Shown here piece by piece: positions 1 to 5,935 of a DNA stretch of 5,935 nucleotides. Made by a program: the position numbers and the translations under genes. The notes beneath the pieces were generated by a model. The model made no database searches and was not told where the DNA came from. It was given only the letters and a program-made list of their open reading frames with translations. Source of the DNA: Paramicrosporidium saccamoebae KSL3 (taxonomy: Eukaryota > Fungi > Cryptomycota); the NCBI GenBank assembly GCA_002794465.1, contig MTSL01000036.1:1-5935 (forward strand). The letters are read 5' to 3'. Position 1 is the first letter of the stretch. Each line of letters starts with the position of its first letter.

Positions 1-438
1 TTCTATCGACGCAAAGCGACAGCCATTAAGCGAGCCACACAGATTCTCAAAACGTCTTACGATAGCGATATACCTGATTCTCTTGAAGAATTGCAGAAGC
101 TACCCGGTGTAGGCCCCAAGATGGCCTGTCTCGTAATGCAAAACGCATGGGGTCGTAACGCAGGCATTGGGGTGGATGTTCACGTTCACCGAATTTGCAA
201 CCGTCTGGGCTGGGTCAAAACCAAGACACCAGAGGAGACGCGCACTGACCTTGAAGACTGGCTTCCACGGGAATTGTGGACTGATATCAATCCGCTTCTT
301 GTAGGATTTGGACAGACAGTCTGTCTTCCAGTCAAGCCCAAATGCTCCGATTGCCTGCTGAACAGTACATGTCCGGCAGCGAAATCCTTCTTACCACAAA
401 CCGCCAAGAGGAAAGGGGAGCCCCTTGAACAAGCATAG
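1..438 (+). CDS. NTH1: Endonuclease III-like DNA glycosylase/AP lyase (NTH1/NTHL1 family), 5'-partial
   Basis: Frame +1 is open from base 1 ([42 protein letters not shown]...), so the track start at 91 is an internal TTG and not the true start. It contains the HhH motif LPGVGPKMA with the catalytic Lys, [11 protein letters not shown] with the catalytic Asp, and the 4Fe-4S motif C-x6-C-x2-C-x5-C ([17 protein letters not shown]). Stop TAG at 436-438. Confidence 0.96.
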
Positions 439-473
439 CCACCCTAATATTGTGAGGTAGTGGAATGGTTAGC

Positions 474-536
474 TGGGTGTTGAGTGCTGAGTGCCGAGTG
501 TTGAGTGCTGAGTGCTGAATGTTGAGTGCCGAGTAT
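474..536. repeat. Degenerate 7-bp tandem array, consensus TGAGTGC, 9 units
   Basis: Units read directly: tgggtgt tgagtgc tgagtgc cgagtgt tgagtgc tgagtgc tgaatgt tgagtgc cgagtat. Confidence 0.92.
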
Positions 537-703
537 TTGGCCCAATATGAAAAGGAGGGTCAGAGCTTCCAATGGTTGGAGATACTGGCCCTTCCATGTT
601 TGGACGCATGCTGGTAAATCCATACCAGTGGATAATGAACAGTTTCCTGTTACCCATTTATATTATTGACACTGTGATAACACTTCCACCACACAACAAT
701 GTA

Positions 704-722
704 ATTGGCTCTGCTATAAATA
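704..722 (+). promoter_or_regulatory. Putative core promoter of the CYSTM gene: inverted CCAAT box plus TATA box
   Basis: ATTGG at 704-708 and TATAAATA at 715-722, about 45-60 nt upstream of the ATG at 767. This is a motif match only. Confidence 0.5.
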
Positions 723-766
723 GCTTGAATAGATATATTTATGTGATATTTACAGTGGCGGAGCAA

Positions 767-1167
767 ATGAGTCGCGCATTCATGGGTGGCTCGAACCTCC
801 CTCCGCCTTATCCTGGAGCCTATGGCTCATCATCCGTACTTTTGTAGCATGATTTTCTCACATCCCAGTTCCCCATGGCTCACACTGAACAACCGGTGAA
901 ATATTATGACGCTCAAGGCAACCCCGTCTCAGTGGTGTACATGGCCTCTCCTGGTGCCTACGCCGCTGGTCAGCCTGTATACATGTACCCTCAGGGAGCT
1001 ATGCCTCCTCCGCCAGTGGCACAGCCGAACAGCTGTGGCGGTAACAACCCACCCAGCAATCAACGCACAGAAGGATGTCTGGCCGGGTATTGCATGCACA
1101 AGCTCTTTAACTTTACAGTATATGCGCCGCTGTTTTATGTTGCTGCTGTTTGGACATTTGTACTTGA
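767..1167 (+). CDS. CYSTM-family (cysteine-rich transmembrane module) Pro/Tyr/Gln-rich small protein, 111 aa. Exons 767-835, 869-1086, 1119-1167
   Basis: Removing two GT-AG introns (836-868 and 1087-1118) gives MSRAFMGGSNLPPPYPGAYGSSSFPMAHTEQPVKYYDAQGNPVSVVYMASPGAYAAGQPVYMYPQGAMPPPPVAQPNSCGGNNPPSNQRTEGCLAGICAAVLCCCCLDICT-stop (TGA 1165-1167). The tail GCLAGICAAVLCCCCLDIC matches the CYSTM pattern (GCLAALCCCCxLD-like) and follows a typical low-complexity P/Y/Q/G region. Exon 1 is less certain than exons 2-3, and ATG 782 or 875 are alternative starts. Confidence 0.85.
836..868 (+). other. Spliceosomal intron 1 of the CYSTM gene (33 nt, phase 0)
   Basis: gtacttttgtagcatgattttctcacatcccag. GTA donor, CTCAC branch-like motif, CAG acceptor. 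It contains an in-frame TAG (845-847), and removal fuses two same-frame Pro-rich ORF pieces. Confidence 0.75.
1087..1118 (+). other. Spliceosomal intron 2 of the CYSTM gene (32 nt, phase 2)
   Basis: gtattgcatgcacaagctctttaactttacag. GTA donor, TTAAC branch-like motif, CAG acceptor. Removal restores the CCCC-containing CYSTM tail. Confidence 0.9.
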
Positions 1168-1215
1168 TAATACATTTCACAATTATTCATGCTTGGTGTT
1201 TTTCTGAATGGATCT

Positions 1216-1256
1216 GATTCGCCAATTTCTTGCAACTTGGCTTCAGAGTCGCCAAT
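1216..1256 (+). promoter_or_regulatory. Tandem CCAAT boxes upstream of syntaxin paralog A
   Basis: gattcgccaat (1216-1226) and gagtcgccaat (1246-1256) match at 10 of 11 positions, lie exactly 30 nt apart, and end about 50 nt before ATG 1307. Confidence 0.5.
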
Positions 1257-1306
1257 AGGATTCTTCTAAAGATAATAGTCGTGGGCCCGGCGAAAGAACA
1301 CTTGGC

Positions 1307-2305
1307 ATGGCAGTCGATCGGCTATCAGAGTTGCAACAAGCCGTCAGTCAGTTTCCACAGAATATCCCCAAGCCTCTTGATGATCCTCCAAAGCCTCAGG
1401 TACAAGAAACTGGCAAGAAGAAGGCGAAAAAGCGCAATAAGAAAAACGTTTCCCCAGCTGCGCCTCCGCCCCCTCCACCGGTGCCGAAAGATCAGCTAAA
1501 CATGGAAGCTTTCTTCAAGCAAGTTTCCCAAATCGAGGAGGACCTCCAGAAAATTGAGAGGAATTGTGATGCGGTGGATATGGCACACCAAGTAATCATC
1601 CACTCCGTGTCCGAGGAAGAGATCAAGGAGCAAGAAGCAATCATTGGGAGCTTTATGGACTTGACTAACAAAACTTCGACGAGCGCCAAGGGGCTTTTAA
1701 AGTCGATTGATTCAGAAACTGAGGCTCTTGCGTCTCAAGCGCCTCGAGGATCGGGCGATTTGCGGATGCGGAGAGTGAAGCATGCTGCATTGGTGAAAAA
1801 GTTTTCTACGACAATGAAGAGATTTCAGGAAATTCAACAGCGCGCCTCTTCAAAACACCAGGCACAAATCCAAAGGCAGTACAAAATTAGTACAAATTGT
1901 TTCGAGATACTAATAGATTTAGTGAATCCAACTGCAGATCAGGACGAGCTGGACAATGTTGCCAATACTGTGGGAGCAATGACTCTTACGTCTCAGCAGA
2001 TATTCTCCCTCGGCCAGTCCCGGAATCCGCTAGAGACGCTGGAGAGAATGAAGGAACGACGAAAGGACGTGATGGCCATTGAGAAGGGCATTGTGGTACT
2101 GGCTCGATTTGACTAATTTTGGTAGACTCTCAACCAAATGTTTATTGATCTTAATAATATGATCGAAGAGCAAGGCGCTCTACTTGACAGCCTGGAAGGC
2201 TACCTCGGGGAAACGGTCGAGTACACTGAAGAGGCCGAGAAGACGATGACCGAGGCAGTTGGTACTCAGAGGAACATACGAAAACTTCACTGCAGCGTAG
2301 TGTAG
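1307..2305 (+). CDS. Syntaxin-1/Sso-family Qa-SNARE paralog A, 311 aa, no transmembrane domain, ends in CaaX-like CSVV. Exons 1307-1889, 1923-2095, 2126-2305
   Basis: N-peptide-like MAVDRLSEL, Habc helices (MEAFFKQVSQIEEDL..., GDLRMRRVKHAALVKKF), linker QRQYKI|MNP, and SNARE motif LERMKERRKDVMAIEKGIV|TLNQMFIDLNNMIEEQGALLDSLEGYLGETVEYTEEAEKTMTEAVGTQRNIRKLHCSVV-stop with the zero-layer Gln in EEQG. The last exon (2126-2305) is missing from the ORF track. TAG at 2303-2305 is followed by AATAAA at 2308. Confidence 0.9.
1890..1922 (+). other. Intron 1 of syntaxin A (33 nt, phase 1, in frame, no stop codon)
   Basis: gtacaaattgtttcgagatactaatagatttag. GTA donor, TACTAAT branch site at 1908-1914, TAG acceptor. 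Removal gives QRQYKIMNP, collinear with ERQYKIVNP and ERQYLIVKP in the two paralogs. Confidence 0.85.
2096..2125 (+). other. Intron 2 of syntaxin A (30 nt, phase 0)
   Basis: gtactggctcgatttgactaattttggtag. GACTAAT branch site, in-frame TAA at 2114-2116. Removal gives IEKGIVTLNQMF, collinear with IEKSIKELHQMF and IETSILELHQLF. Confidence 0.92.
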
Positions 2306-2307
2306 GG

Positions 2308-2313
2308 AATAAA
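2308..2313 (+). terminator. Candidate polyadenylation signal (AATAAA) of syntaxin A
   Basis: A canonical hexamer 2 nt after the TAG, followed by a T-rich tract (tcatttttt, 2317-2325). Motif match only. Confidence 0.4.
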
Positions 2314-2323
2314 ATATCATTTT

Positions 2324-2373
2324 TTGATTGGATATTGGCGCGAGCTGTAACTTTACGCAGTTCTGACCAATTG
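2324..2373 (+). promoter_or_regulatory. CCAAT-box cluster upstream of syntaxin B
   Basis: TTGATTGG at 2324-2331, ATTGG at 2334-2338 and ACCAATTG at 2366-2373. Confidence 0.4.
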
Positions 2374-2506
2374 AAACCAAATCTGTGGAGTGTGACGAAT
2401 TAGAATCCAGTTGTCGCTCGCTCTGAGTAGAAGACTGGCGCAGTCATTCTGGACCAGTGATTTATCCCTAGCAGCATAGAGGCCGCTGCTCAACTGACTC
2501 GCAAGT

Positions 2507-3469
2507 ATGGGAGTTGATCTTCTAGGCCAATTCAATCAAGCGACCAAACAGGCTGCGGCCGATGGGACTGCCTATGAGCAGGCCGATCGACTAGAGCGTG
2601 GGGATCCTCCCCCCACTGAAACGAATATAGAGGATGAGGCAATGAACATGAAGCACTTTTACGAGCAATGCGAAGAGATTTCGAGCCATACGAAAAAGGT
2701 AGAAATGTTCACCAGCGAACTCGACAAGCTACACAAGCAGGCACTGACAACCACTGGATCTGAAGCGTCTGCAGACACTTCCTCCAAGATTGACATTATC
2801 ACTGCCAAGGTGAATCAGCTCTCAAACCAGAGTCGAAACACGCTAAAGGCGATTGAGCTTGAAAACTCTCAGCTTAAAGAGATTGCACCACCAGCAAGTG
2901 GACACATGAGGATGCGAGAGTCAAAGCATCGTGCCCTTGCCACTGCCTTTCTGAGTGCAACCAAGAAGCTGCAAAAGCTGCAACAGAACTACCGGGACAA
3001 GTACAAGCAGCAGCTGGAGAGACAATACAAAATTGTCAACCCGAACGCCACTCCCGAAGAAATTGCCCAAGTCACCAAAGACACAGAGGGAGCTCAAGCC
3101 AAGATCTTTGCCTCTGCTGTTAGGGACGACGCCAAAAAGACTTTGTCACAGATGAAAGACCGATTCCAAGATGTCAAAACCATCGAAACGAGCATTTTGG
3201 AACTGCATCAGCTCTTTTTAGACTTGCAAACACTAGTCGTGGAGCAGGGAGACGTCATCAACCGCGTAGAGTACAATGTTGACCACACACTAGACTACAC
3301 TGACGAAGCTGCAGCAGATATGAAGCTGGCGGTTGAATATCAAAAGTCGATTTGGAAGAAGAAGTGGATAATGATTGTTCTTATTATCGTTGGCATCGTT
3401 CTGCTTATCCTCATTTTACTTTGGCTATTGAGGCCATTATTTCAAATTGCGGCCACGCCCCGATACTAG
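2507..3469 (+). CDS. Syntaxin-1/Sso-family Qa-SNARE paralog B, 320 aa, intronless, C-terminal transmembrane anchor
   Basis: A single ORF with N-terminus MGVDLLGQF, Habc region (MKHFYEQCEEI..., GHMRMRESKH), ERQYKIVNPNATPEEI, SNARE motif with LVVEQGDVINRVEYNV, and basic KKK followed by a 22-residue hydrophobic segment WIMIVLIIVGIVLLILILLWLL and a short tail RPLFQIAATPRY. Confidence 0.95.
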   Translation: MGVDLLGQFNQATKQAAADGTAYEQADRLERGDPPPTETNIEDEAMNMKHFYEQCEEISSHTKKVEMFTSELDKLHKQALTTTGSEASADTSSKIDIITAKVNQLSNQSRNTLKAIELENSQLKEIAPPASGHMRMRESKHRALATAFLSATKKLQKLQQNYRDKYKQQLERQYKIVNPNATPEEIAQVTKDTEGAQAKIFASAVRDDAKKTLSQMKDRFQDVKTIETSILELHQLFLDLQTLVVEQGDVINRVEYNVDHTLDYTDEAAADMKLAVEYQKSIWKKKWIMIVLIIVGIVLLILILLWLLRPLFQIAATPRY

Positions 3470-3520
3470 ATTATATAACTATAGATTTCCAAAATACAGC
3501 ATTATTAGCAAATTTGTGGG

Positions 3521-3580
3521 TTGATTGGTTGTACCACTTGAGCCTGATTTGTTCTTTAAAACGTACCAATTGGCCGGCCA
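3521..3580 (+). promoter_or_regulatory. CCAAT-box cluster upstream of syntaxin C
   Basis: TTGATTGG at 3521-3528, the palindrome CCAATTGG at 3566-3573 and the overlapping palindrome TGGCCGGCCA at 3571-3580, ending about 40 nt before ATG 3621. Confidence 0.45.
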
Positions 3581-3620
3581 CATGGCATAGGTTGCATAAC
3601 ACAAACCTCCCTAGTGTTGA

Positions 3621-4617
3621 ATGAAAAACCGACTGGAAGACTTTCACGCCGTAACATTGCCGGCTTGTTCACTAATTTTTCCATAGGCTGCTGCCACAAG
3701 TCCTTACATGTCTGCTACACCACCGCCCATGGTGGAAAGGTCGGCCCATGACGGCGACTTGGAACTGGGCGTCCTCTCTGCTGCCACACCCACAGACCGT
3801 TTTCTCTCCTCAATAGAGGAAGTTCGAGTCCGTCTTGAGAAGATTAACAAGTCTGTTGGTGATATTGAGCACTTGCACCGACAGGCTCTCAATGCTATTA
3901 ATATGGACGAGGCCACCCGTCTAGGCCGCCTCATTGACGAAATGGTAAGCCGCAACAATGCAGACGCGCAGTTTGTCCGACAGACACTAAAAACCCTTAC
4001 GGGAGAGACTGAAAACCTCAAATCGACGGGAGCGGTAACTTCCTCCGACTTGCGGATCCGTATGACACAACAGTCGCGGTATGCTAAAAAGTTTATGGGG
4101 GCAATGAACAAGTTTCAAGGGATGCAGACTACCTACCAAGGAAAGTACCGCCAACAGCTGGAGCGACAATATCTGATTGTAAAGCCCAACGCGTCACGAG
4201 AAGAACTGGATCGGCTAACTCACTCTGCCGACGCCACGGCCATGCTGAATCAACAAGTAAGCACGCTCACCAAACTAACTTTAGATTTTTGCAATGGCTA
4301 ATAAGGCACAAGCACAGAAAACATTGGCCGAGATGAAGGAGCGACATCAAGATATAATAGCTATAGAGAAGAGCATCAAGGAGCTGCATCAAATGTTTGT
4401 CGACATGGCGATCATTGTGGAGCAGCAAGGCGAGCTGATTGACAAGGTGGAAGACTTTGTCACCAACACGGCAGAGTACACAGAGGCAGCTGCGGAGGAG
4501 ATGCGCGGAGCAGTGGTTCGACAGAGGAGCACCCAAAGGAAAAAGTGGATACTGACCATAACCATTATTATTATCTTGGCAGTGGTTGGTATAATTGTTT
4601 GGGCCACCTGGAACTAA
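3621..4617 (+). CDS. Syntaxin-1/Sso-family Qa-SNARE paralog C, 310 aa, C-terminal transmembrane anchor. Exons 3621-3650, 3687-4256, 4285-4617
   Basis: A 10-codon first exon MKNRLEDFHA resembles the syntaxin-1 N-peptide (MKDRxxEL-like). It also has SSDLRIRMTQQSRYAKKF (compare syntaxin-1 DLRIRKTQH...RKF), ERQYLIVKPNAS, the splice junction MLNQQ|IFAMANK, SNARE motif IVEQQGELIDKVEDFV, and RKK plus WILTITIIIILAVVGIIVWATWN-stop. This model joins track ORFs 3708..4301 and 4294..4617. Confidence 0.92.
3651..3686 (+). other. Intron 1 of syntaxin C (36 nt, phase 0)
   Basis: gtaacattgccggcttgttcactaatttttccatag. CACTAAT branch site. The acceptor TAG is itself an in-frame stop. Confidence 0.85.
4257..4284 (+). 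other. Intron 2 of syntaxin C (28 nt, phase 0)
   Basis: gtaagcacgctcaccaaactaactttag. GTAAGC donor, ACTAAC branch site, TAG acceptor. It explains the frame change between the two track ORFs. Confidence 0.95.
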
Positions 4618-4839
4618 TAAAAGATGATATATACCGAATATGCAGTGAAGAGGAGTAAATATGGGCATTGCGAGGTCGTTAGCGTTGGGCCTGCAAAGTA
4701 GTGAAATGACAATGTCTATTTAGAGCATGATCGGATGAAAGAATTTGTCTATAAAGGAGAGTATATTGTATATTACATTATCACGTAAAATATGACTATG
4801 AGAAGCAGACACTAATTAGAACTTGACACTTAGTTCCGA

Positions 4840-4913
4840 GGCCTACTGGCCAAATTGGACAAGGCGCCAGACTACGAATCTGGAGATTGCAGGTTCGACC
4901 CCTGCGTAGGTCA
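4840..4913 (+). tRNA. trnR-ACG: tRNA-Arg, anticodon ACG, intronless, CCA not encoded
   Basis: Cloverleaf folded by hand: acceptor stem GGCCTAC (4840-4846)/GTAGGTC (4906-4912), discriminator A, D arm GCC/GGC with TGG loop, anticodon stem CCAGA/TCTGG with loop CTACGAA (ACG at 4874-4876), T stem GCAGG/CCTGC with loop TTCGACC. Confidence 0.96.
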
Positions 4914-4918
4914 CTCTC

Positions 4919-4923
4919 TTTTT
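4919..4923 (+). terminator. RNA polymerase III terminator (T5)
   Basis: TTTTT begins 5 nt after the tRNA discriminator base. Confidence 0.75.
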
Positions 4924-5061
4924 GGTGGTTTCAAGCTTATTATTGTAAGAGTGAGTACCTATTGACAGTAGATGTCACTCTACGGTAACCGTTAGTAAAG
5001 TGGGATGGCCATTTGGATTGGGACCACTAACAATATAAGCAAGCCTTATTGTGATGGTGTA

Positions 5062-5105
5062 ACTACGGACTACGGACTACGGACTATGGACCACGGACCG
5101 GGGAC
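5062..5105. repeat. 7-bp tandem array, consensus ACTACGG, about 6 units decaying rightwards
   Basis: Units read directly: actacgg actacgg actacgg actatgg accacgg accgggg ac. Confidence 0.9.
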
Positions 5106-5188
5106 AACCAAAGAGTCTCTACCTCTATTCGGGTCTTACAATCACGCTAAATTTTTCACTCAAATTTTAACAAATAATATATAGTCTA

Positions 5189-5935
5189 TTATTGGGGCTT
5201 TCGGTGTGAAGGATGAAGAAGGCGATAATCCGCGCTGTCTTGGTCAATTTCGAAATCTGGATCATTAAAGAGGTCTGTAAAGCGATCATCTTTGAGCAGC
5301 GCCTTGGCAGTATCTCTGGCCCTTTTCTTATTCTTGATATCCTTGCTGGACACTTCCTGTTCCTCATCCACCTCAACATTCTGTTCTTCAACAAGCTTGG
5401 TAGCCAGACTACGATTGACTTTGGCAGATTTTGAGGGATCGCGGGCTCGAATGCGAGATTGCCGCTCTTTCTCCAATTTCTCCAGCTTCTTGCGAGCCAG
5501 ATATTCCTCGTAGGCAAAGGGATTGGCAATGGCCTTTGCCTTTTCGTAGAGCCGCAGATCGATGAAATATCCGTGCATGTAGGCACGAAGAAGATTACTG
5601 CCTACCAAATGGTCCAGACCGAGCTGGGCCAACTCTGACTTTGTGACAAATTTAAAGTTGTCATATACAGCGACGTTTTGAGAGGAATCCTCCTCCATCT
5701 CCTCAGTCATGTTTTCCAGGAAGGAGCACCACCGCGGAGCTGGCCCTAACGAGGGAACAAAGTAAGCCGAGATTGGCGACCCTTCATTGGCAACCAAAAT
5801 GAGGCCTGTACCCTGCTGGAGGGTGAAATCGTTCACATCTTGCTCCGACTCGATAGTGGTAAATAGCCGTGATGAGGGATCATTGGAGCCGGACCGCCAG
5901 AATCGGATAGACCTCTTATCGGCGGAAGTGAGCAT
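5189..5935 (-). CDS. ENP2: ENP2/NOL10 small-subunit ribosome biogenesis protein, 5'-partial (end of WD40 region through NUC153 motif)
   Basis: Contains the family signatures LGPAPRWCSFLENMTEEMEE, VYDNFKFVT, LLRAYMHGYF, ANPFAYEEY and the NUC153-like DDRFTDLFNDPDFEIDQDSADYRLLHP. The Met at the window edge is probably internal. Stop TAA at 5191-5189. Confidence 0.96.
   Translation of the reverse strand: MLTSADKRSIRFWRSGSNDPSSRLFTTIESEQDVNDFTLQQGTGLILVANEGSPISAYFVPSLGPAPRWCSFLENMTEEMEEDSSQNVAVYDNFKFVTKSELAQLGLDHLVGSNLLRAYMHGYFIDLRLYEKAKAIANPFAYEEYLARKKLEKLEKERQSRIRARDPSKSAKVNRSLATKLVEEQNVEVDEEQEVSSKDIKNKKRARDTAKALLKDDRFTDLFNDPDFEIDQDSADYRLLHPSHRKPQ

Follow-up and report, generated by a model that had tools for sequence, protein, structure and literature searches.

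Some SNARE proteins are held on membranes by lipid: Ykt6 is prenylated and conserved across eukaryotes, and SNAP-25 is likewise a lipid-anchored SNARE. Whether fusion mechanically depends on SNARE transmembrane (TM) helices has been debated for 25 years, chiefly by means of engineered lipid-anchored constructs. Prenylation is directed by a C-terminal Cys-a-a-X (CaaX) box and is followed by cleavage by Rce1/Ste24 and methylation by Ste14 at the endoplasmic reticulum (ER); Leu or Phe at X favours geranylgeranyltransferase I (GGTase-I), Val and Ile being less decisive. A prenyl group combined with a polybasic stretch sends K-Ras4B, Rho GTPases and others to the plasma membrane. For engineered Snc-CIIL, geranylgeranylation reportedly sufficed to attach the protein to membranes and to target it correctly, and Snc-CIIL and Sso-CIIL (ggSNAREs) are both reported as membrane-associated and correctly targeted (PMC2192637). 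The syntaxin STX11 reportedly works together with the Sec1/Munc18 (SM) protein Munc18-2 and with SNAP23 (PMC4049605, PMC4791091), and for the Leishmania major protein LmjF33.1340 a CILM tail can be deduced from the 3' cloning primer (PMC1626469). Here we describe a syntaxin gene, A, of Paramicrosporidium saccamoebae KSL3 with a predicted CaaX box where its neighbouring paralogues B and C have a TM helix. It lies in a stretch of 5,935 nucleotides (GenBank assembly GCA_002794465.1, contig MTSL01000036.1, positions 1 to 5,935; hereafter the window). The gene comprises the following features:

1307 to 1889, plus strand: exon 1, encoding the N-peptide, a disordered Pro/Lys-rich linker and the Habc domain (open reading frame (ORF) and splice model)
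1890 to 1922, plus strand: intron 1, 33 nt, phase 1, GTACAA...ACTAAT...TTTAG
1923 to 2095, plus strand: exon 2, encoding a linker with the family signature VGAMTLTSQQIFSLGQ and, from 2069, SNARE layers -7 to -5
2096 to 2125, plus strand: intron 2, 30 nt, phase 0, GTACTG...ACTAAT...GGTAG
2126 to 2305, plus strand: exon 3, encoding SNARE layers -4 to +8, the basic linker, the CaaX box and the stop
2171 to 2173, plus strand: codon of the zero-layer Gln268, within exon 3
2267 to 2290, plus strand: basic linker QRNIRKLH, directly before the CaaX box
2291 to 2302, plus strand: CaaX box Cys308-Ser-Val-Val, a predicted prenylation site (Cys codon 2291 to 2293)
2303 to 2305, plus strand: stop TAG, ending the spliced product of 311 residues
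2308 to 2313, plus strand: AATAAA, a possible polyadenylation signal three bases 3' of the stop and the sole such hexamer in 2306 to 2506

After removal of the two introns, the 311-residue protein ends AVGTQRNIRKLH-C308-S-V-V and contains two cysteines in all; the eight residues upstream of Cys308 include four basic and no acidic ones. Excision of intron 1 gives ...QRQYKI-M-NPTADQ, which can be aligned with ERQYKIVNPNAT of B. The position of intron 1 is shared with the orthologous loci L001, L004 and L010, and that of intron 2 with L001 and L010. Counting 40 residues on from the zero-layer Gln leads to Trp in B, Trp in C and Cys in A. The TM helix follows KKK-W in B (tail AVEYQKSIWKKK-WIMIVLII) and RKK-W in C (tail AVVRQRSTQRKK-WILTITII), and A terminates three residues past the point at which the TM helices of B, C and syntaxin-1A begin. 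An initial annotation of the window had read the tail as CSVV-TAG followed by AATAAA, on an exon starting at 2126, and had placed the Cys on the Trp that opens the TM helix of the neighbours; the spliced model and the count from the zero layer confirm both. A minus-strand ORF (2180 to 2380, 66 aa) overlaps exon 3 and is without supporting evidence.

A TM-like segment was sought in all frames of the 201-base spacer between A and B (2306 to 2506) and none was found; all frames contain stops. For alternative splicing, every GT or GC donor in 2200 to 2305 was joined to every AG up to 2700, giving 385 pairs; the GT dinucleotides at 2262, 2297 and 2302 that had been tried as donors before are all present. 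None of the 385 routes yielded a TM tail, the highest mean Kyte-Doolittle value being 0.89 over 18 residues; the TM helices of the TM-anchored syntaxins in our hit list have means above 2.4. A hidden TM exon was rejected on the basis of these pairs and of a three-frame translation of 2250 to 2520, neither of which gave a hydrophobic tail. The absence of a TM segment, by frame or by splicing, that the initial annotation had reported is thus borne out and extended to 385 routes.

Selection on A was evaluated by the Nei-Gojobori method over 308 codons aligned with its orthologue in L010. The ratio of nonsynonymous to synonymous substitution (dN/dS) was 0.057 for the whole gene (dS 0.69, dN 0.039), with regional values of 0.175 in the N-terminal linker, 0.054 in Habc, 0.011 in exons 2 and 3 together and 0.013 in exon 3 alone. 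L010 is an independent assembly, the last exon of which is 98% identical to that of A and stops at the same position; the single amino-acid difference in this exon is Ser to Asn at a1. An assembly error at the TAG is therefore unlikely, and it was rejected, the same stop position recurring in independent assemblies from many samples. Purifying selection of this strength excludes decay, and a pseudogene was likewise rejected, the SNARE layers being intact. The earlier judgement that A does not look like decay thus holds, on grounds of selection as well as of an intact series of layers with its zero-layer Gln.

A is a real syntaxin of the plasma-membrane Sso1/syntaxin-1 (Qa.IV) type, minus the TM tail anchor. 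Residues 65 to 211 match the Pfam Syntaxin profile (PF00804) with 76.2 bits at a cut-off of 26.7. With heptads counted from Gln268, the residues in the 16 SNARE layers are V I I L F L I Q L L L T T A M A, and each agrees in kind with its counterparts in B and C, as expected of the intact motif originally described. In a phmmer search against the PDB, residues 61 to 305 aligned to residues 26 to 263 of syntaxin-1A (85 bits); Monosiga syntaxin-1 (65 bits) and Sso1 (48 bits) followed, weaker matches included yeast Sso2, and the endosomal syntaxins 7 and 13 reached only 25 to 27 bits. The nearest relatives of solved structure are thus exocytic syntaxins, not those of the Golgi or endosomes. The syntaxin-1A alignment ends at R263, and three more ungapped residues put C308 on I266, the first residue of the syntaxin-1A TM helix. 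An AlphaFold2 model of moderate confidence (mean predicted local distance difference test score 69.5) consists of an N-peptide helix, a disordered linker (residues 15 to 65), the Habc helices (66 to 99, 103 to 142 and 150 to 195) and a continuous helix from 230 to 310. The best Foldseek matches of this model were closed syntaxin-1 in Munc18 complexes and Sso1 (target-normalised template-modelling score approximately 0.7), and scores normalised in the same way against Habc crystal structures were 0.8 to 0.9.

The N-peptide of A, MAVDRLSELQQ (1307 to 1342), is of the DRxxEL type and, judged by its sequence, is predicted to be of the kind that binds Sec1/Munc18 proteins. Orthologues carry MPVDRLAEFQQ, MASTDRLAEFQE, MTSVDRLAEFQK or MARDRLEDFQK, and DRL(A/S)E(F/L)Q is kept in all orthologues examined. 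The first exon of the L004 orthologue (MARDRLEDFQK, approximately 5640 to 5720), read by eye, is apparently joined through a GC-donor intron, no GT being suitably placed. Between N-peptide and Habc lies a Lys-rich cluster, GKKKAKKRNKKN (1412 to 1447, residues 36 to 47). A-type proteins have such a cluster in common, in distant members in basic-hydrophobic form (for example KKKSIFGRKKK, KKKHLFRRK and KRSFFSRKKKR); it may provide an additional site of membrane binding or act as a nuclear localisation signal.

The CaaX tail is a property of a family. A word-indexed protein search with the last exon alone returned only four proteins, and the first protein search gave seven ORF-style fragments from metagenome and SRA assemblies; the family was revealed by an exhaustive profile search of 1.84 billion representatives and by a second, broader profile search. 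Tails of ORF-style gene calls were counted only if they ran to a stop codon. Among the best 150 representatives, all sequences nearest to A with a complete C-terminus have a lipidation-type tail, and the TM-bearing matches are B-like, C-like or more distant syntaxins. The TM-less proteins share the ending ...QKNIR+x+-CaaX, and 25 of 27 A-type sequences, which come from independent assemblies and are approximately 30 to 98% identical, end in a canonical C-x-[I/V/L]-[V/F/I/L/A/C]. Over these 25 tails, a1 is S (10), N (10), A (2) or V, T and F (1 each), a2 is I (18), V (4) or L (3), and at X stand V and F (8 each), I (4), L (3), and C and A (1 each). The orthologues of A in L001 and P0011 both end ...NIRRLR-CNIL, that in L004 ...NIRRLR-CNLV, that in L007 ...NVRRKK-CSII, that in L010 ...NIRKLH-CNVV and that in L011 ...NIRRLR-CNIV, each directly before the stop. 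Tails in the wider family are CSIF (four times), CAIF (twice), CTIF, CNIF, CFII, CVIV (as CCVIV) and CSLA, and further CNIL, CNVV, CNII, CNLV and CSII. Family-wide, three to six of the eight residues before the Cys are basic and none is acidic, except for one Glu in the chimeric sequence P0021. In an alignment (A3) of 15 diverse members that share 32 to 62% identity with A across their C-terminal 118 residues, seven of the 118 columns are invariant, among them that of the Cys. In line with the check that the initial annotation had proposed, orthologues keep the Cys at -4 while a1 and X drift, and no TM helix was found in any A-type sequence with a complete C-terminus.

Two further members carry the tail in an unusual form. 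The ORF calls P0164 and P0166 at first appeared to be without a CaaX box, but the DNA revealed an extra intron. In L014 (5346 to 5418) the sequence reads AAT ATC CGA CGG / GTACGC...GTACTAAT...TGTAG / CTA CGC TGT AGT GTC GTC TAG, with the predicted splice product NIRR-LRCSVV and stop. In L015 (1340 to 1393) it reads CGA AAG / GTAATA...CTTAAC...TGTAG / CTG CGA TGC AGC ATT TGT TGA, with the predicted product NIRK-LRCSIC and stop. In both loci the last six codons and the stop would lie on a 21-nt terminal micro-exon, so that splicing would be needed to make the CaaX box. It is difficult to see why a splice would be kept solely to add LRC-a-a-X if the tail were of no importance.

The locus itself is conserved. 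At least three further species (L001, L004, L007) have the genes in the order Nth, small gene, A, B, C and NOL10; in L014 the genes of the same block are rearranged, still linked, and in L012, which is AT-rich (33% G+C), Nth is once more adjoined by an A-type gene, here without introns and with the ending CSLA. Long arrestin-domain genes neighbour related loci and, with the intron style (GTA...CTAAY...TAG), hint at a fungal affinity. By tblastn, A, B and C show clean 1:1:1 orthology, with between-species identities of 41-57% for A:A, 61-67% for B:B and 60-70% for C:C, and of about 30-35% for A against B or C. These identities mark A as an ancient paralogue with a higher rate of change than its two neighbours. 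In a neighbour-joining tree of 56 syntaxins (243 columns, everything from the Cys/TM position onward removed), all A-type CaaX proteins fall into one clade, apart from the B-type and C-type clades. P0072, a syntaxin of exocytic type with a long C-terminal run of Cys followed by CVIM, falls outside this clade and has apparently lost its TM helix independently.

Together, these data make it likely that A is a functional, conserved plasma-membrane Qa-SNARE whose TM helix has been replaced by a predicted lipid anchor of the CaaX type. The original reading, a TM helix exchanged for a basic stretch plus CaaX box on a functional Qa-SNARE, is supported at the level of sequence. The tail of A has the Cys at -4, an aliphatic a2 (Val) and, as a second signal, the basic stretch. 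Cys308 is thus a putative prenylation site, and geranylgeranyl appears the most likely modification; the lean towards GGTase-I first suggested fits the residues counted above at X across the family. In the mechanism that we propose, cytosolic A would be prenylated on Cys308, most likely with a C20 geranylgeranyl group by GGTase-I, a farnesyl or mixed modification being possible since X is Val. The -SVV tripeptide would be cut off and the new C-terminus methylated at the ER, and A would be retained at the cytosolic leaflet of, most likely, the plasma membrane by its prenyl group acting jointly with QRNIRKLH, a basic linker free of acidic residues. There A would act as a syntaxin, offering its N-peptide and a closed Habc/H3 conformation to a Sec1/Munc18 partner and pairing its 16-layer SNARE motif with Sec9/SNAP-25-like and Snc/synaptobrevin-like partners. 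Because its anchor would reach only one leaflet, A may be expected to serve a specialised or modulatory fusion step beside B and C, and not bulk exocytosis.

Several observations weigh against a CaaX-anchored, functional Qa-SNARE. The Val at X leaves the signal ambiguous between GGTase-I and farnesyltransferase. The match to the Pfam SNARE profile (PF05739) has 16.1 bits (E = 0.012), under the cut-off of 26.8, and covers profile positions 2 to 40 of 53, the last 13 being unmatched; B and C score approximately 40 bits, and several A-type relatives carry a precomputed PF05739 match. A evolves faster than B and C in the same species (41-57% against 60-70% identity). Two family members depart from CaaX. 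P0013 ends KCCCCSCC and lies on a 54.7-kb ENA contig (54,676 bases) that also bears B-type (P0041) and C-type (P0032) genes; its Cys cluster suggests convergence on a form like that of STX11 and STX19. P0021 ends ECIAE; on its 1,383-base ENA contig a bacterial-looking dehydrogenase E1-like N-terminus is fused in frame to an A-type C-terminal half, so that the contig is probably a chimeric assembly, and its tail was not counted as canonical. The bootstrap value of the CaaX clade is weak (41/100), and a single origin of the CaaX tail is therefore suggested but unproven. The family sequences all come from unannotated assemblies (Logan, ENA, JGI). Finally, over-expressed Sso2-CIIL is a dominant inhibitor of exocytosis (PMC2192637), so that a plain fusogenic role of A is not to be assumed.

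An alternative reading accepts the lipid anchor but holds that A chiefly inhibits, as nature's equivalent of Sso2-CIIL: its SNARE complexes would stall before full fusion, or it would titrate Sec9, Snc or Sec1, and so set the rate or place of exocytosis. The ggSso2 and ggSnc proteins assemble into complexes and block fusion after docking in a dose-dependent manner (PMC2192637), phospholipid-anchored SNAREs reportedly fail at liposome fusion (PMC2185554), and the two TM-anchored paralogues next door could carry the bulk of the work. However, lytic-granule secretion reportedly depends on syntaxin 11, a TM-less syntaxin found in nature, and on its lipid tail, and is not inhibited by it (PMC4049605, PMC4791091), and the constraint on the SNARE layers (dN/dS 0.011) and the N-peptide fit a productive SNARE equally well. 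We regard a mainly inhibitory A as possible, though on balance unlikely. The broader proposition that a clade of eukaryotes, probably early-diverging fungi, keeps a geranylgeranylated syntaxin as a built-in brake or gate on exocytosis seems to us doubtful. If true, it would entail docked, hemifusion-arrested or reversible SNARE complexes, or cycling on and off the membrane, and thus a control of exocytosis that yeast and animals are not known to have, with a natural counterpart of the dominant-negative Sso2-CIIL.

Decidedly improbable, in our view, is that the terminal Cys is S-acylated (palmitoylated) as in STX11 and STX19, or put to another use such as a disulfide or metal contact. The Cys cluster of P0013 would suit acylation, as would the second Cys beside the CaaX box in P0015 (CCVIV), the combination of poly-Cys with CVIM in the unrelated syntaxin P0072 and the basic stretch beside the Cys, which favours S-acylation too. 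Yet S-acylation follows no spacing rule, while the Cys stands exactly at -4 in 25 of 27 sequences; a2 is always aliphatic and X mostly V, F, I or L, which is the defining CaaX grammar; and two species keep a predicted micro-exon dedicated to the tail. That A has been truncated and is decaying, or that it stems from faulty annotation or assembly, its true TM exon or a read-through overlooked, would agree with its being the fastest-evolving of the three paralogues and below the Pfam SNARE cut-off, but is already contradicted by a dN/dS of 0.057 at a dS of 0.69, by a stop position repeated across independent assemblies from many samples, and by 385 splice routes devoid of a TM tail next to a 201-base spacer devoid of a hydrophobic ORF, and we give it hardly any credence.

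The window as a whole is gene-dense (47% G+C), with very short introns. Besides A it contains:

1 to 438: 3' end of an endonuclease III/Nth gene (Pfam HhH-GPD)
875 to 1086 and 1119 to 1167, plus strand: CYSTM (cysteine-rich TM module) gene, 86 aa, with an intron of 32 nt at 1087 to 1118 (Pfam PF12734, 26.8 bits at a cut-off of 25.2)
2507 to 3469, plus strand: syntaxin B, an intronless TM-anchored paralogue of 320 aa (Pfam Syntaxin and SNARE)
3621 to 4617, plus strand: syntaxin C, a TM-anchored paralogue with exons 3621 to 3650, 3687 to 4256 and 4285 to 4617 (Pfam Syntaxin and SNARE)
4257 to 4284, plus strand: second intron of syntaxin C, 28 nt
4840 to 4914, plus strand: tRNA-Arg(ACG), intron-less, between C and NOL10
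5189 to 5935, minus strand: 3' part of a NOL10/Enp2 gene

The CYSTM protein is Pro/Tyr-rich and ends GCLAGICAAVLCCCCLDICT before its stop, and the NOL10 piece matches the human protein with 221 bits, that of Chaetomium with 190 and that of yeast with 172, scores that do not discriminate between these lineages. Syntaxin C has a putative 5' exon of 10 codons (3621 to 3650; MKNRLEDFHA, a DRL-type N-peptide) followed by a 36-nt intron (3651 to 3686); the long ORF from 3708 would omit both. The five introns of the window (1087 to 1118, 1890 to 1922, 2096 to 2125, 3651 to 3686 and 4257 to 4284) all measure 28 to 36 nt, an unusually tight size class, and have a GTA donor, a CTAAY/TTAAC branch-like motif just before the acceptor, and TAG or CAG as acceptor. 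Heptamer microsatellites occupy two intergenic positions, GCTGAGT x9 at 472 to 534 (also readable as a 21-mer x2.8) and ACTACGG x5.3 at 5062 to 5098.

In the literature that we searched, largely outside subscription journals, we found no prenylated, farnesylated or geranylgeranylated syntaxin, no prenylated Qa-SNARE described as such, and no natural conserved CaaX family of the Sso/syntaxin-1 type; no mention of a CaaX syntaxin is made by Kienle et al. 2009 in their survey of fungal SNAREs. A family of more than 25 such genes thus apparently is undescribed, no report having been found, although lipid-anchored SNAREs as a class are already known. The family may have escaped notice because its members sit in unannotated assemblies, those looked up being without accession; a CaaX syntaxin would go undetected by gene finders and SNARE surveys for which a TM tail is a requirement. 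The caveat in the initial annotation that protists might hold earlier reports was apt, as a prenylated TM-less Qa-SNARE was predicted in Leishmania major in 2006 (PMC1626469).

That protein, LmjF33.1340 (Besteiro et al. 2006, PMC1626469), resembles A in being a TM-less Qa-SNARE with a predicted prenylation site. Unlike A it is syntaxin-16-like and kinetoplastid, its fusion to green fluorescent protein is punctate, and it is not described as part of a conserved family; beyond being a syntaxin it is unrelated to the CaaX clade. SNAREs of Legionellales (e.g. LseA) and of some giant viruses also have a SNARE motif followed by CaaX and no TM helix, but these are effectors or viral proteins lipidated by the host (10.1101/810531, 10.1101/2022.01.28.478187), whereas A is a spliced chromosomal gene with full syntaxin architecture and synteny with housekeeping genes. 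STX11 and STX19 share with A the exocytic type, the missing TM helix and attachment through lipid on C-terminal cysteines. They differ in that an S-acylated Cys-rich cluster without CaaX grammar takes the place of the single tail Cys of A, and the TM losses look independent, in a comparison in which STX11 and STX19 are absent from the neighbour-joining tree. Ykt6, like A, is a SNARE without a TM helix that ends in a CaaX box (CCIIM type), and the CCVIV of P0015 resembles its double-Cys form. In contrast to A with its Habc domain and zero-layer Gln268, Ykt6 is an R-SNARE with an N-terminal longin domain able to shield the lipid; with A, the few CaaX SNAREs listed for eukaryotes would gain a Qa-SNARE.

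The closest parallel is provided by the Sso2-CIIL and Snc2-CIIL constructs (Grote et al. 2000, PMC2192637). In Sso2-CIIL, as in A, an Sso-type Qa-SNARE has its TM helix swapped for a CaaX box at the same junction; a2 and X are aliphatic in the construct as in A, and the family tails CSII and CNIL differ little from CIIL. The A-type natural proteins have in addition a Lys-rich N-terminal insert. With B and C beside it, A completes a natural set of three matched proteins with which the abilities and limits of a Qa-SNARE anchored in a single leaflet can be explored. Sso2-CIIL is a laboratory construct that is toxic when over-expressed, while A is natural, is conserved across a wide clade, stands under strong purifying selection and is encoded next to its TM-anchored paralogues.

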